Source of the DNA: Adineta vaga
Taxonomy: Eukaryota; Animalia; Rotifera
Reading direction: 5' to 3'
Length of the DNA stretch: 64,000 nt
Assembly: GCA_021613535.1 (NCBI GenBank)
Contig: CP075495.1
Location: forward strand, 2,604,001-2,668,000
Position numbers and translations under genes: made by a program
The notes under the pieces: generated by a model
The model's database searches: none
What the model saw: only the letters and a program-made list of their open reading frames with translations
Told to the model about the DNA's origin: nothing
Shown here: piece by piece, positions 20,980 through 38,788 of the stretch
How the letters are laid out: each line of letters begins with the position of its first letter
How positions within the stretch are numbered: the first letter of the stretch is position 1

Positions 20980-23719
20980 ATGCAGAAACTAACAACTGAT
21001 GCTTTAATGGTAAATTAATTTTGAATAGCAAGTCCTTTGAGCCTCATTATTTTCTCATTCTCTTGTAGCGTTTTGCTAAGAATGGTGCGTGTGGTGAACA
21101 ACCGATCTTACAAGTATTGGTAATGAAAATTCTAATTTTAATTGATTGATACTAAAAGATCATCTATTTAGAATATTAAACTAATGGATTCCAAACCGGT
21201 CAATGAATCTGTAGTGACACCGAGTCAAAACAAAAAAGCTCAACGCTATCGTCTTATTCTTTCTGATGGCAAACACTTTTTACCGTGTAAGTTAATAAAT
21301 AAAATCAGAAATTAAGATTTATCTTTTCTCAATATTTAAGCTTGTGTTTTAACTGTACAATTAAACGAATTAGTTACAAATGGTCAATTACAAGAATATT
21401 CTATTATTCGACTTGATCGTTTTTTACGTAGTGATCTGAAAGGACAAGCAGCAAAGTATGGATGATCAATTTAAAATGATCATTGTGAGTCAAGTTTTTT
21501 CTTCTTATTCTCTTAGAATGATTTTACAAGTTCTTCAATTAACTGTATTGGATATTGCTACACATAAAATTGGAAATCCGATTTCATTGTTAACAGCTGA
21601 TTTAAATGAAGAAGATAATTCAACAACATCAGTAACCAAAGATATCCTCCAACCAAAAACAAACAGTAAGTATTGATGTAATTCTTGTATTTTCTAAGAG
21701 TACTTCACAAGAATACAAGACGTGAGAAATTTCTAAGCAACTTGAGACACATTGATAGTCATGTCGTTCTAAATTATTTCAATAATCATAACAGAACTCA
21801 TAAAAGAGTCTCTTTAGGTTCAATCAATAAACGTCCATTACTTCCAGTAAAAAATGAACAGCCTGTATTACCTCCTCCTCCATCAGCAACATTACTAATA
21901 ACGATAGATGTTGATTCAATAAAAACGAATCGATTATTTAAAATCGAAGCATTAAATTCATTTCAAAATAGGTATATAGAACATTTCTTCTTTTTATACA
22001 ATTTCTAAAAAATCATTTCTTAGATGGACAATTCGAGTTCGAGTTGCACATAAGAAACCAGTGCGTACATTTTCTAATGGTGAAGGTCGTTTATTCAGTT
22101 GTGATCTAATCGATGAAACAGGTGAAATACGTGCGACTGGTTTTGGTGATGAATGTGATCGATTTGAACCTATTCTTATCGTTGGCAATGTATTTCTTTC
22201 GTTCATAAATTGAATCAAATACTTTTCTTTCGTTGTCTAGATTTATTATATCACTCAAGCTCAAATCAAATTTGCCAATAAACAATTTAATACACTAAGC
22301 AATGATTTTGAAATGACATTTAATAATGAAACTATTATTGAATTATGTACTGAAAGCATTCCAAGTATTCCAAAACAACGTTTACATTTCATTCCAATTG
22401 ATCAAATTCTAAATATGGAATCTAATTCATACATTGGTATATAAGATTATATTTCTTTGATTTTCTATTCAATGATGGAAAATTGTTTCTTTCTAGATGT
22501 GATTGGTATTATAATGAGTATTAATGATATTGTTCAGGGGAAAAGTAAACAAAATAAAGAATATACAAAACGTGATATTTCGATTCTTGATCGAACTGGT
22601 CAAATTAATGTTACATTATGGTATAAAATGGTATATAGATATAAGAGAGTGAGAGAGAATATTCCTGATGTAAATATGTATTCTAGGCTGAAAATTTTCA
22701 AACATCATCTCTTCGAACTGTAATTATGTTAAAAGGTGTTTGTATTAATGATTTTAATGGAGGTAGTAATAAATATAATGAGAAATGAGAGAAAACAAAT
22801 ATACTATCTAGGTCGAACATTATCTGCTCTTGGTAATACACAAATTGAAATGGATCCTGATTTACCAGTAGCTCATGAACTTCGTCGATGGTATTTAGAA
22901 GAAGGAATGAATATTGAAATGACAGATTTAACTCTTCAATCAAATAATCATGAAAATAGTAAAACTTAACTTTCATATTATCTATTAGATTGAATAAAAA
23001 CGAATTTATTCTTTAGTTTCATGGAAAACTTTTGCTCAAGTAGCTGAATATGAATTGAATATGCCATCATCTACAATTGGTGAAGTTTTTCGAGTAAAAG
23101 CTGTTTGTACACATGTACGACATGATCCTGTTTATAAAGTAAAACAAAAACAATATTTATTTTCAAAAAAGTAAATCTAACCAATATCTAGGCTTGTACT
23201 CGTGTGGATTGTAAAAAAAAATTACAAGATAATAATGATGGAACATATTACTGTTCAAAATGTGATTTAACCTATGAAGATTTTAAATTATTGTACATGA
23301 CAAGTGTATGTATTCTCTTCTATTGTCTTGGAATATTGTTTCGAAAGTATATTTATTTAGATTGTTTTATCTGATTCGACAGGCTTTCGATGGGTTAGTT
23401 TTTTTGAAAAAGAAAGTGAAATATTATTTGGTTGTCCAGCTGAACAATTTCCATATGGAAAAACAAAAGATGACGAAGATAAAGCTTATCAAAAATTAAT
23501 GAGTATTTTTGGTGAAGAAAAAATGTTTCTTATACGAGTAAAATCCAATCATTACAATGTAAGTATGAAGTTTAGTAAAAAACGAAAGAAAAAAAATGAA
23601 ATGATATCATTTAGAATCAAGATCGAATTCAATTTACATGTATAGGATTAGAAACAATTGATGCTCGTCAAATTTGTCGTTTGTATTTAGATGATATTGG
23701 ACGAATGTGTGTTAATTAG
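20980..23719 (+). CDS. RPA1: Replication protein A 70 kDa subunit, about 15 exons
   Basis: RYRLILSDG (RPA70N), LNSFQNRWTIRVRV..GEGRLFSCDLIDETGEIRATGF (OB-A), VTLW..DFNGGRTLS..EMDPDLPVAHELRRWY (OB-B), YKACTRVDCKKK..YYCSKC zinc finger (OB-C). Confidence 0.93.
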
Positions 23720-24065
23720 ATAGATATTCATTGTTTTATTTGTTTGTATATTATTAGTAACAGTAACAACTGTCTAGCTCATTAATTAATGAAATTTGAT
23801 CGTTAATAAAAAAAAAGAAAAAGAAACGCACAAATTATCTTTTGTTTTTCACGAACATAAGTTTCAACATCCTTCAATCGTTTCGTATTCATTAGGATTA
23901 AATTCTGTTAACATTATACAATTGTCACGAATATTTGCTTGTGTTCTTTTGTATACATCATTCATTACAAATGTCGAGGGGTTTTAAGCAAAAAAAAACA
24001 AAAAGGAGAAGAAGTAAATACATAAATATTTCGAAGAAAATTTCTGTTTTTATTTTTCGATATAA

Positions 24066-24229
24066 CGGTCTGAGCGCGAACGCAGAGACGCTGCTAACAA
24101 ATTGACCTCTCTCTTCGCCCCGATATGGAGCGAAAGCAGGATTTAGTTTATAGCGTAGTGCAATGCCAAAACCTCGTCCTGGATGTTCAGTATTCATGAT
24201 CACTGAGACGATCAGAGGAAAGTAAGTAT
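24066..24229 (-). ncRNA. U1: U1 spliceosomal snRNA (164 nt) with variant 5' end AUACUUACUUU
   Basis: 5' ATACTTAC; helix H CCTCT/AGAGG; SL1 loop GATCATGAAT (U1-70K site); SL2 loop ATTGCACTAC (U1A site); SL3 CTTTCGCTCC/GGGGCGAAG; Sm site AATTTGTT; SL4 with GCG-TTCG-CGC tetraloop. Confidence 0.95.
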
Positions 24230-24244
24230 GAGTCTGTGATTTTC

Positions 24245-24295
24245 TTTTGACTTCATATATATACATTGTCAAATGGCAAAACACGGCGATGAATG
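24245..24295 (-). promoter_or_regulatory. Candidate snRNA promoter: PSE-like element plus TATA-like tract
   Basis: Minus strand TCATCGCCGTGTTTTGCC at about -63 to -46 and TATATATATGA at about -34 to -24 relative to U1 +1. The assignment rests on position only. Confidence 0.4.
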
Positions 24296-24795
24296 AATAG
24301 AAGACACATGAGAGAAAGAACAAAATGGTTGATGACTCATCTCGAAGCACGAGATTCTGAATCATTGGATAGAAATTTTTCATTGAGTTTGGAAGTTATT
24401 TTTTTTATATAAACATAAAGAAAACTATGATTAGATCTCTTTTATTAAAATAGATTTTATTTTCCAAGAAAAAAAACCTTTTATTTTAGTTCAAACAGAT
24501 ATTTAAATTAATAGTCGTTTTATTTCAATAGAAAACACAATTTTCTTTTCATTTCAATCAAAAATAAAATTCATTTATTGATTAATTCTTAAAAAAAAAT
24601 CAATCGACGTAATAATTCGATCTTGAAATGTCGCTATTGATCAGCTGATATTTTACTAACGTCGCTATTAGCAAGTAGAATTATTCGTAAGAAATGGCAT
24701 CATCTCAACCAATGAAAATATTTTCTTCTTATTTGAGACTAAACTAATTTTCTCAACTTGTCTGTTTAGTGTTGAATAGTTTTATTTTCTTTCAG

Positions 24796-27291
24796 ATGTC
24801 GAATTCAAAAAATAAATCTCTTTCATCTCCTGTCAAACATTCTCATTCATCGATTCACACAACTGAACAAAATCAACAATCACGTCATTCAATACACTGT
24901 TCAGATTTTCCTTCAGCTTTATTTTCAACAGTCAATCAATTTCGTCTATCAGATCTATTTACTGATGTAACGATTTATGTCGATGGAGTTTCATTTGCAT
25001 GTCATCGTTTAATTCTTGCTGCTGCTTCGCCCTATTTTCGTGCGATGTTTTCATATAATTTTCGTGAATCAACAGAAGGTAATGTTCGTATACAAGACAT
25101 AACACCATGGACAATGAAACGAATACTTGAATTTATCTATACTGGTCATACAGATATAACAAGTGAAAATCTCTTCGAAATGTTTAATGCAAGTGTAATG
25201 TTATCGATCAAAGAATTAACTGATTTATTAATAAAATTTCTTTATCTACAAATTGATATTTATAATTGTATACAAATTGAACAATTAGCAACTTTATATT
25301 CATTAGAAACCTTACGTCGAACAACATTACAATATATTGTTGATCATTTTATGTGTCTATATGAAAAGAAATTATTTGTTCATTTAAATGAACATACATT
25401 AATGGAAGTTTTATCCGATGATAATCTAGATATTCCAAAAGAAGAATATGTTTTTCTAACAATTGTTCAATGGGTTAATTATCATCCTAGTGAACGTGAA
25501 CAATATTTTCAAAGTTTATTTAAATTTATACGTTTAAATTCCATAAGTGATAGTGATTTTGTAACGAATTCAATGCGTAATGAAAAATTAGTTCAAAAAC
25601 ATCCAACTTGTTTACGTACATTGAAAGATTTTTATTCGAATAATTTCATTCCAGACCTACTTGGTCCGATGCGGTGAGAAACGATTTGATTAATAATGAT
25701 TTTTTTTAAATATCTTTCTCTTTTTTTTTTATTAGACCGAGTACTCAAATCAGATATCATTTAATTGTGATTGAATTATCATCGAATGACGATGAAATCG
25801 AAGATGAAGAGATCGAACATGAACAATCAACGAATACTAAAGATACAGATGAATCTATCTCGACATTTTATCGAAAATTTTCTGCACAATTACAAGTTAA
25901 TGATGCAGCGACAAATCATATTTCAAATCAAAAGTATGTTGAGATGTGTATCACGAAGTAGTGAAATGAGAACAGATCGAAGTAAATTAAGAAGTTTTCA
26001 TTGATGATTAGTCGAATTGTATGAATGTATTAAACTCAATGATTTTGTCTTCTTTATTTTTTCTCCTAGTAATATTGATTCAAATCATTGTGATTCTTCT
26101 CCGAATTTCCATCATCATCATTATCGTTCACCATCACCGGACTATCGTCTATCTTCTTCATATTGTCATTTACATGCATATGATTTCTTTCGAGAACGTT
26201 GGCGATTTCTTGGTCGTTTACCTGAAGTTTTTTCTCATGTATCCTGTGTATCAACTCATACAACACTCTATCTATTCGGTGGACAATTACAGTCTGGTGA
26301 ATTAAGTGATCGTATATGGATATTACCATTCTCAACACTTAAATGGCAAATGTCTTCACTACGTTTACCATTTCCACGTGGTCAACATACATGTGTTCTA
26401 TTTCATAATGTTGTTTTATTATTTTTTGGTGTAACACATTTATCTTCAACATCAAATCCTTGCCGATCAGTAGATATGTTTGATCTAACAAATGAAACAT
26501 GGACATGTCTTGGTGAAAGTGTTCCTTCATATCAATGTGAACCGATCGTAGCAACAGGACAATTGATATTATTATCGAATAAAAATGATACACAAATGTT
26601 ACATACATATAAATTGAGAATGCAACAACATGATGAATTAACGAATGGACAAACAATAAAGAATACAACATCAAATGATGATTTAACGTCAACATCAGTA
26701 CTAGTCAAAGAGAAAGGACAACTTTCACGAGTAAATATCAAATCTTCTTAATAGTTTCTAAGATTATTACCTGAAGGAGGAGAAAAAAAAAAGAATCTCT
26801 CGAATTCGTGACAACTTCACATTATTTTTCTTTCTTTCTAGACTCCATCATTGGATAATACAATTAGTAATGAACCTTGTTTAATATCAGCTGGTTATTA
26901 TATGCTACCACGTAATAATAACATTGGTCGATTTTCACTTGTAACACATGAAGATGATCTTTATTTAATTTATTGGCAATCGAAACAAATTTATCGTTTT
27001 AATCTTGTACGTAATGAAATTTTATTGAAACAATCCATGCCATATTCCTATATGAATCATTGTCAATGTGTACTTGTTGATCGTCGTCTTATTGTTAGTG
27101 GTCTAGTTTATCTTTCGAATTTAACTGATATTGAAAAACAAGCTTTATTAATATTAAATGACAAACGATCATCAAAAAAAGATTCCTATTGGGTTATTCA
27201 AATCTATGATATTGAAAATGATCGATGGTCAATATTACCTGATCAACAAATTCAACGAAAACATCTCTTATTTGTATCGAAATTATCTTGA
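24796..27291 (+). CDS. BTB-BACK-Kelch (KLHL-like Cul3 adaptor), 4 coding exons
   Basis: FTDVTIYVDGVSFACHRLILAAASPYFRAMF (BTB), LSDDNLDIPKEEYVFLTIVQWVNY (BACK), and LYLFGG / VDMFDLTNETW / IQIYDIENDRW kelch-like blades. Confidence 0.9.
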
Positions 27292-34318: not shown

Positions 34319-36116
34319 ATGGAGTACGGAGATTTAGAAGAAGATACACTGTATGTATTGGAAAGAAAGAAATATTTTGTAATTATTGAAAATCAAACGT
34401 TTGATTTCTTTCTAGTGGCATGACGTTAACATCTGGTACATGTACATTGAAGAAAGATGCTCAGAATTTAGTTGGAATCAGTATTGGTGGTGGCTCACCA
34501 CTTTGTCCTTGTTTATATATTGTTCAAATATTTGATAATACAGCAGCATCACGAGATGGTTCGTTAGCAGCAGGTAGATATCATATAAATGTTTATGTTA
34601 GATTTAAAAATTGATCTTTCTTTTGCTACATAGGTGATGAAATTGTGTCTGTTAATGGAAAATCAGTTAAAGGACGAACGAAAGTAGAAGTAGCAAAACT
34701 TATTCAATCTTCTAAAGTAAATATTCACTGTTCTTAATCATTGATTCAATTTTGATCGTTGTACATGTTTTTCTAGACAGAAGTAGCAATACATTATAAT
34801 AAATTACATGCACAACCAAAAGAAGGCAAAACATTAGATATAGGTTTGTTTCAAACGAATTCTCATTTTAACTATTCATTCATTCATTCATCGTTTTCTT
34901 CTTGAATTAGTGATGAAAAAAGTGAAACATCGTATTGTGGAAGGTATGAGTTCAACAACTGCTGATGCACTTGGTCTTAGTCGTGCTATACTTTGCAATG
35001 GTAAATCATAAACAATATTCATTTCAATCGTCTAATGAGAATTTGTATTTTATAGATGGTTTGATTAAGAAATTAGATGAACTTGAACGAACATCTGAAT
35101 TATATCGTGGTCTTATTGAACATACACGTGCTGTTCTTAAGGCAATCTTTGAAATAGCACATACACATCGAAATTTCGGTGATGCATTTGCTAATATTGG
35201 TGCACGTGAACCTCAAGTTAAAGCTTCGGAAGCCTTTACAAAATTTGGTGAAGCTCATCGACAAATTGATCGACATGCAATAACATTACTTCGAACTGTT
35301 AAACCTGTAAATACCGAATGAAGATCAAAATGTTTACTTTCTCGTTTTTCTTAGATGATTGCTGATCTGAATACTTATTTGACAAAAGCAATTCCAGATA
35401 CAAAACTAACAATTGAAAAATATGCCGATGCAAAATTTGAATATTTAGTAAGAGTTTTTTTTTAATAATCGAACAAATATTATTATCATTATCAAATATT
35501 TCTTTAGTCTTATTGCTTGAAAGTGAAAGAAATGGATGATGAAGAATGCAGTTATGTTGCACTTCAAGAACCACTCTATCGTGTTGAAACAGGCAATTAC
35601 GAATATAGGTATGAGATACAAGCGATTGTTCATTTTGCTGTGAAATTTTCATGATTTAGATTAATTCTTCGATGTCGACAATTAGCTCGAGAACGTTTCG
35701 CTAAAATGCGTGCAGATGTACTTGTCAAATTAGAATTACTTGATCAAAAACATGGTTTGTTTATTTTGCATTTGAACAATCTTTTTCTAACGAATGAATT
35801 TCTTTTCATTTTAGTACAAGATATAGTTTTTCAATTACATCGATTCATTACAGCTTTGGATAAATATCACAAAGATTGTAATGATGTTATGAAAGAAGCA
35901 GATATCTTTCCAATTGAAGTTGATCTGACATTGCCAATGTTTCGTGGCAGAGGAAATCCTGATGACGACGATGATGAAGAAGATGATGATGATGATGAAG
36001 TGGATGGTGAGAATGAAGAAAATGATAATGATCTATTGACCGATGATCAACAAATAATAGATTTTAATCAACAACCAACAGTTAAAGATATTGATCTATT
36101 AAATATTGGTCCTTGA
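34319..36116 (+). CDS. PICK1: PICK1 (PDZ plus BAR/arfaptin homology domain, acidic tail)
   Basis: LEEDTLGMT..LKKDAQNLVGISIGGGSPLCPCLYIVQIFDNT, MSSTTADALGLSRAILCNDGL, DLNTYLTKAIPDTKLTI, DVLVKLELLDQKH. Confidence 0.97.
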
Positions 36117-37632: not shown

Positions 37633-38788
37633 ATGCAATCATCACCTTTTTTTCGTGATAGTTTAAAAGTATGTGATCGAATATGATTTTTCTTAAATCT
37701 TGGAATACAATATCTTTTTATTTATTTAGTCTTCACCATTTGTTTCATTAATGAGCAAACGAACATTTGGTGAAGCGTACGTTATACTTTCGTTTTCATA
37801 ATTAACAAATAAATAATAATGATTATTGAATAGGAAAACTCCACCAAGTCCTCTATCACCTGGACAACAAAAACGTGTTCGTTTTCTTGTTGATAATAAC
37901 AATGATCAATCAAGTATGTCATCTTATTCTTCAAAACTAATGTAATTTATCTTTTCTATACTAGTTGATGAATCTCAATCATCGATTCTATTTCGACAAG
38001 GTGGAATAGGAACACGTTCGGGTAATATTAGTGCATTTGATGAAGTCGAAAATACACGTCGAATAACATCGAACTTTCTCTTTGGTAATACGAATTCTTC
38101 GTTTGATTTTGGATTAATGACACAAACTGGTATGGATCAACCGATGGAAAATGTAAACAATTCCAATAATAATTTTACTTTTATTCAAACAACTCAACGA
38201 ACAAAGTATACTTTTGATTGTGTTCCTTTATAATCATTGTTTTATTATGTAAATGTTTAGTCTTGCGAATGAGAATGGAAATGATGGAACTTGGTTAACA
38301 GTGTTTGGTTATCGAACCAATACTGATGCTCGAACATTAATAGATGAATTTAGTCAATTTGGTGTTATAGAAAAATTTGTGGTATGAATATGTTGTTTTC
38401 ATTTGAATCTATTCATTCATAATTCGACATAGATTGTTGATGAATCGAATATTTTTCATCTAAAATTTGAAACTCGTCTTCAAGCACAACGTGCTCTTAC
38501 AAAACATGGTCATATATTTGGTCAAATAATGATTGGTGTACGATATTGTACTGATAAAGTATGTTAGAAATGATTTTCATCATTTGATATTTATGTTTTC
38601 ATATAGGATGTAATTGGGTTGAAACCACAAAGTAGTACGAATGTTTATCTTGAAAATCCATTTCTTATACGACATCGACATCGTCTAGGTGTTTTATCAG
38701 TACGTTATTATTAACAGAAGGATAAAAACTGATTTTGATATGAATACTTATTTTATTTTAGTCAGCACCACTTACAGTTCAAAATTAG
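37633..38788 (+). CDS. NUP35: Nucleoporin NUP35/Nup53 (RRM-like MPPN domain)
   Basis: Spliced TWLTVFGY...LIDEFSQFGVIEK..NIFHLKFETRLQAQRALTKHGHIFGQIMIGVRYCTDKDVI is the Nup35 RRM signature. Not in the ORF track because the exons are short. Confidence 0.85.

Follow-up and report, generated by a model that had tools for sequence, protein, structure and literature searches.

Many of the human vU1/RNVU1 paralogs carry one to three changes in the donor-reading end of the U1 snRNA and have been found in snRNPs; these variants are heterogeneous and together make up less than 0.1% of U1 (Mabin et al. 2021, PMC8457000). In Entamoeba and Mastigamoeba the U1 5' end is changed to read intron positions +3/+4, and Physarum reportedly carries a standard and a modified U1 (Roy and Bowser, bioRxiv 10.1101/2022.06.08.495308). 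Human U1 engineered at positions 9-10 is taken up into the U1 snRNP and activates 1473 matched exons, and the C12-G pair in helix H is functional in engineered U1 (PMC13500670). Two U1s with identical 5' ends occur in Fritillaria, and a 2026 paper names a duplicated, divergent U1 as an obvious route to other donors that was not used in tunicates (PMC13326754). Opinion is divided on which RNA, U1 or U5, dictates the exon side of the donor consensus (PMC11732430, PMC8283771). In a search of mainly open-access literature, no paper was found on U1 variants or donors of bdelloids, nor on any animal with a conserved exon-side variant.

The U1 gene considered here is located on the minus strand at 24065..24229 of a 64-kb stretch of the Adineta vaga genome (the window, meaning the whole stretch of DNA that was analysed). 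It resembles canonical U1 (RF00003) in its four stem-loops, helix H, 70K and U1A loops, Sm site and positions 1-8, and differs from it in the changes C9U and G11U, a flipped SL3, another promoter element and an identity of about 60%. Like the human vU1 genes it is a paralog with a changed donor-reading end that stands beside canonical U1, but the rotifer change is fixed: three of the six U1 genes carry it, two rotifer families have kept it, and a large class of donors fits it. The Entamoeba and Mastigamoeba U1 likewise has a 5' end altered to fit the donors of its genome, although in Entamoeba the modified form replaces the single U1 whereas the rotifer variant is an animal RNA that reads the exon side and occurs together with canonical U1. 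Changes at positions 9-10 also retarget the engineered U1-GA to A-ending exons (PMC13500670), which is artificial and matched to GA/GU (slash, exon boundary) while the rotifer variant is natural and matched to AAA/GU. U11 (RF00548) likewise is a divergent member of the U1 clan, serves a donor class of its own and here has a promoter type in common with the variant. The genome has a separate true U11, however, and the variant gets its best score as U1, retains the U1A loop and reads GUAAGU.

The window RNA (165 nt, assigned to a subtype termed vA) matched the RF00003 model at full length (model positions 1-166 over 24229-24065; 86 bits against a cut-off of 69.5 bits, E 6.7e-20) and was the single Rfam RNA match within the window, and its identification was further supported by an RNA contig and by identity to Rotaria sordida. 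An earlier note on this DNA, which named no strand, had described an intact U1 with all functional loops and UUU instead of CUG at positions 9-11, and both readings were confirmed. The donor-reading end (AUACUUACUUU, 24219..24229) had U9 at 24221 and U11 at 24219 in place of C9 and G11, so that positions 9-11 (24221-24219, minus strand) were UUU. The canonical 5' end ACUUACCUG was absent from the window U1, which has ACUUACUUU, and judged by sequence the gene is a variant rather than a canonical U1. Positions 1-8, which read the intron side, were identical to those of canonical U1.

Downstream of this end, the 5' strand of helix H (CCUCU, 24214..24218) pairs with 24106-24110 as CCUC(U)/(A)GAGG, the helix that the same note had given as CCUCU/AGAGG, and its pairing in columns 12-15/122-125 was kept by compensatory changes across four U1 types. 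The Rfam alignment placed the SL1 loop, the predicted U1-70K binding site (GAUCAUGAAU), at 24192..24201, where loop positions 6-8 were variable among the vA copies, and the SL2 loop AUUGCAC, the predicted U1A binding site (24158..24164), was invariant in all U1 types. The lower stem of SL3 (24111..24136) was strand-flipped in both variant subtypes, being CUUUC...GAAGAG in the variants as against CGAAA...UUCUCG in the canonical copies, and columns 96-99/115-119 were changed on both sides between nine variant rows and five canonical rows. The Sm site AAUUUG (24098..24103) was assigned from the Rfam alignment and sequence comparison, and the SL4 UUCG tetraloop (24077..24080) was invariant. A cloverleaf with helix H and SL1-SL3 was supported by covariation, both sides being changed in 24 of 36 predicted pairs across the four U1 types, which are related sequences and not independent events. 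The stand-alone folding energy of the window U1 was weak (z -1.6); structural support for it comes from this covariation. Identity as U11 was rejected since the best clan match of the window RNA was U1 and a separate U11 is present on contig C1. A 141-codon open reading frame over the U1 gene (23958-24383, minus strand) was also rejected, as stops close the reading frame in five of five relatives tested.

In a search of 100.8 Mb in six contigs of A. vaga, both the Rfam model and an independent pattern identified six U1 genes, of which three are canonical and three variant. The canonical genes start ACUUACCUG and include two similar copies, one each on C3 and C6, and a divergent one on C6, while the variant genes start ACUUACUUUC and comprise the window gene, its homoeolog on C5 and a third gene on C6. 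The window gene and its C5 homoeolog were identical at 141 of 164 positions, the C6 variant was only about 60% identical to either, and the window variant was about 60% identical to the canonical U1 genes of A. vaga. The variants scored 79-86 bits with RF00003 compared with 99-109 for the canonical copies. Two deep variant subtypes, vA and vB, were delimited. They are only about 60% alike but have in common the 5' end, the flipped lower stem of SL3 and the type of promoter; the donor-reading end with U9/U11 was invariant in 13 vA and 7 vB sequences. A pattern of the U1A loop and SL4 returned the same six genes only, with no U1 type having a further 5' end.

With three canonical ACCUG genes still in the genome and U9/U11 in only three of the six copies, the variant forms a class of paralogs that has not replaced U1. 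The specialised paralog that had been proposed earlier was supported, and the lineage-wide replacement of U1 proposed beside it was refuted. The C6 variant (vB) is arranged head-to-head with the divergent canonical U1 at C6:4233946-4234518 (L001:1090-1663), and this cassette recurs in metagenome bdelloids (L014, L035, L046, L050, L072, L088). The divergent canonical U1 of the C6 cassette has an unusual Sm site, AUCAUUUUUC, and a U1-like 5' word at position 2259 of the same locus (L001) was discarded as it had no U1 body. On C5, an 8.2-kb tandem duplication (approximately 14662990-14671190 and 14671190-14679380; L110-L112, 97.8% identical) has its start within the variant U1 homoeolog, with a 49-nt 3' U1 fragment remaining; it is either a real duplication or an assembly of two alleles.

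Syntenic loci in relatives were reached via the proteins of a neighbouring F-box gene. The same variant, including its 5' end, was found at the syntenic place between RPA1 and the BTB-kelch gene in three Rotaria species, R. sordida, R. sp. Silwood1 and R. socialis. Compared with R. sordida, the first 11 bases were identical, positions 12-165 were identical at 149 of 154 (97%) and the promoter element at 21 of 23 (91%), while the flanks were 55-61% identical. Together with covariation, the promoter and the RNA contig, these comparisons bear out the claim that this is a selected gene and not a decayed copy. In a metagenome scan, 23 AT-rich contigs carried one or other variant subtype, after pattern matches without a U1 tail (gut-metagenome and others) had been set aside. 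In a tree of 29 distinct U1 sequences, a branch (100/97.9) separated both variant subtypes from every canonical sequence; it does not prove a single origin, as the tree is unrooted and long branches meet there. No other letter occurred at 24219-24221 among the rows listed for a DNA run aligned to the window, and the same end was present in two more A. vaga genes, the three Rotaria species and the 23 metagenome contigs; UUU as a sequencing error was accordingly rejected. The variant is a real, old and conserved U1 class that is probably transcribed. A gene of 190-225 residues with no Pfam match was located directly downstream of the variant U1 in Rotaria and several metagenome bdelloids (L096:5545-6278, L097, L098) and was absent from the A. 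vaga window and the C5 stretch.

Upstream of the window gene, a variant-type promoter element with a TTCAYC core was located at -67 (24278..24296, minus strand) by matrix scores and its conservation in Rotaria, and a TATA-like element at about -34 (24256..24263, minus strand), which stood at -33 to -36 in nine vA genes. The upstream element of the variants at -65 to -67 differs from the canonical U1 element at -63. With the variant-U1 matrix, four of five held-out U6 genes scored 13.6-17.8 and U11 scored 10.2, weaker than the U6 genes, against a background with a 99th percentile of 10.7 and a 99.9th of 13.1, while held-out U5 genes scored 23-26 bits with the canonical-U1 matrix. The variant promoter element resembles the U6/U11 type rather than the canonical U1/U5 type. 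Transcription of the variant by Pol III was unsupported, as a conserved T run was lacking at the 3' end and U11, which contains an internal T6, shares the promoter type.

The transcript itself was represented in one RNA run of three (X6) by a 154-nt contig over 24063-24216 with zero differences and empty flanks, while the two other RNA-like runs had nothing at the U1 locus. This contig fits a discrete transcript of the window U1 gene itself; it ends 13 nt short of the U1 5' end so that the variant bases are outside it, and such RNA contigs give neither ends, strand nor expression level. Contigs of the same run are spliced, with six joints in RPA1.

Other snRNA genes of A. vaga also showed unusual features. 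The single-copy U11 (L131:1501-1651) has an enlarged first loop with the T6 run and an upstream element like that of U6 and the variant U1. There were seven U6 matches in two sequence groups (L124-L130), including L128 and L129 which read AGAGAGA instead of ACAGAGA and L130 which is cut after the catalytic region, and a tRNA lies approximately 110-130 nt upstream of L127 and L128. Nineteen U2 matches were found, and several on C3 and C4 that scored far lower (49-115 bits) are possible variant U2 genes.

Both neighbours of the U1 gene contain A-ending donors. RPA1 (20980..23719, plus strand, 14 introns), the upstream neighbour, was defined by RNA joints, the gene model, orthologous introns and Pfam matches of the Rotaria orthologs, and its plus-strand donors include AAA/ at 21456 and 23139, ACA/ at 21666 and ATA/ at 22959. 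Eight of its 14 introns lacked G at -1 (A in four, T in four), close to the half that had been estimated, and very weak donors such as CTT/gtaaaa and AAT/gttatt were conserved in Rotaria RPA1. Head-to-head with the U1 gene is a BTB-BACK-Kelch gene (24796..27291, plus strand), supported by RNA joints and by the same neighbour in Rotaria, with an AAA/ donor at 25934. At 25430-25730, contigs of two RNA runs matched the mid-part of the BTB-kelch gene only and had long unlike ends on both sides, and are probably from a paralogous or foreign transcript. Elsewhere in the window, an exon of ZPR1 was 100% identical to an A. vaga protein. Further AAA/ donors on the plus strand were AAA/gtaaat without +5G (34714..34722, posterior 1.0, the same intron being present in A. 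steineri and the C5 homoeolog) and two predicted AAA/gtatgt donors (37666..37674 and 38556..38564). All six donors that had been named proved real, those at 21666 and 23139 being RNA-contig joints and those at 21456, 34717, 37669 and 38559 having a posterior of at least 0.97 and an intron position common to other bdelloids.

Donor statistics were obtained with a gene finder trained on the window plus 200 kb from C5, the donor model of which comprised intron positions only. It recovered 12 of 13 RNA joints (joints that had seeded its training), reproduced the deposited gene extents at Rotaria and A. steineri loci, and gave introns that had a matching homolog intron in 97 of 105 cases for window genes with a homolog. 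The 409 introns analysed are our own predictions from 264 kb, approximately 0.3% of the genome, are all from A. vaga and are partly homoeologous with one 8-kb tandem duplicate. The exon base at -1 was G in 42%, A in 32%, T in 16% and C in 10%. Relative to phase-matched coding sequence, AAA was the most frequent exon end (45 vs 21 expected), most strongly at phase 0 (32 vs 10.5), and given A at -1 there was A at -2 in 89 of 130 donors (51 expected), an excess that was absent given T or C at -1. Enrichment of A at -3 was found in NAA ends (45 vs 32 expected, p 0.003); NAG ends had no such excess (26 vs 33) and tended towards C (21 vs 15.5), so that the -3 preference flips from C to A between the two classes (interaction p 0.0007). 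The +5G was present in 51% of AAA/ donors, 53% of -1G donors and 77% of those with a -1 pyrimidine (p 0.004), so AAA ends put up with the loss of +5G much as -1G ends do; at the other bdelloid loci +5G was present in only 41%. The pattern was repeated when the set was limited to 159 introns validated by homology, and again in 116 introns from other bdelloids, and the phase-matched tests indicate that the donor bias exceeds exon AT content, which had been raised as a possible explanation of it.

Several results did not follow the AAA pattern. GAA/ ends, for which wobble pairing would be expected, showed no enrichment, with 14 vs 14.7 expected overall and 14 vs 26 among NAA ends, and 25 of the 409 donors (6%) had a -1 pyrimidine and no +5G and fit poorly to either U1. 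Inside coding exons AG/GTAW was avoided (ratio 0.37, z -6.5), whereas avoidance of AA/GTAW was not significant (ratio 0.89, z -1.3). Third codon positions were 40% A and only 9% G, and A-ending exons are frequent because of this composition. Codon bias was extreme in the coding sequences of the window and C5, with 16% G+C at third positions.

We favour with moderate confidence a reading in which the variant constitutes a second U1 class that reads A-ending donors beside canonical U1. It would be a second, old U1 snRNA class of the major spliceosome in bdelloids, transcribed from its own promoter type and presumably assembled with the same single U1-70K, U1-C and Sm ring. Its U9-U10-U11 would pair with A(-1), A(-2) and A(-3), making 6-11 contiguous pairs on AAA/GUA donors where canonical U1 would be mismatched at -1, and the predicted fixed-register energy on AAA donors was -4.6 kcal/mol for the variant compared with -2.2 for canonical U1 (a gain of approximately 2.4). 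Canonical U1 would serve the G-ending exons and the variant the A-ending ones. This division of labour, like entry into an snRNP and pairing in vivo, is a proposal based on the fit of the two invariant base changes to the donor statistics and on the published results with engineered human U1. The link between the variant RNA and AAA donors is one that we infer, because U5 loop 1 can also favour AAA and the donors are from bdelloids only. Dedicated protein partners for the variant were considered and rejected as single matches were found for U1-C, the U1-70K N-terminus, SNAPC3 and SNAPC1, alongside three LUC7 loci, all of these counts being lower bounds.

The main alternative, in which U5 loop 1 and AT-rich codons shape the A-ending donors, is unlikely though far from negligible. 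The variant would then be a real but non-dedicated or minor U1, the U9/U11 of which merely tolerate A or G at -1 and -3, with function overlapping that of canonical U1 or with stage-limited expression. The three U5 genes of A. vaga are 98% alike and include no variant U5, and the canonical, U-rich loop 1 (GCCUUUUAC) in three of three copies would favour AAA without the variant if U40-U42 pair with exon positions -1 to -3 as in the cryo-EM register (PMC8283771); a U5-defined donor class has also been described in many eukaryotes (PMC11732430). The human U5 signature in donors without +5G, however, is more -3A with -1G (PMC8283771), whereas here -1G donors without +5G gained -3C (22 vs 12) and not -3A (28 vs 30), and -4A was not enriched in the 409 introns. 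Shaping by U5, or a minor variant, would agree with the weak avoidance of AA/GTA in exons, the unenriched GAA ends, the 6% of donors that fit neither U1 well and a promoter in common with U11, a low-abundance RNA in humans, but two invariant changes in two deeply split subtypes and two families suggest a specific target.

U1 suppresses premature cleavage and polyadenylation in mammals. It is distinctly improbable that the variant acts mainly outside splice-site choice, for example by such suppression at A-rich donor-like sites of nascent RNA in a genome of 70% AT, or as a decoy or regulator. The persistence of AA/GTA sites in exons without clear avoidance and the distinct promoter type and SL3 stem would be compatible with such a role, while the AAA excess and the -3 flip stand at true donors and the intron-reading positions 1-8 are untouched. 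The lower Rfam scores of the variants relative to the canonical copies and the weak stand-alone folding are what a pseudogene might show, yet three loci, Rotaria synteny with 97% identity, the 23 metagenome contigs, compensatory pairs, the promoter and the RNA contig contradict a pseudogene, an assembly error or chance, and we consider these extremely improbable.

We propose tentatively, as a reading that falls a little short of an even chance, that bdelloids have two U1 snRNPs split by exon end, with canonical U1 for G-ending exons and a separately promoted class of two subtypes for AAA-ending exons, which would leave exon ends free to follow the extreme A/T codon usage. Bdelloids look like an animal lineage that did use a divergent U1 to reach other donors. 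Two U1 classes with unlike exon-reading bases and an unchanged U5 make the question of U1 versus U5 testable by genome comparison and by class blocking, and the system may offer a natural model of the -1A donors at which engineered U1s and splicing drugs are aimed. If the division of labour is true, the variant would be a natural, conserved counterpart of the engineered compensatory U1s and would put directly to the test which of U1 and U5 determines the exon side of the donor consensus.
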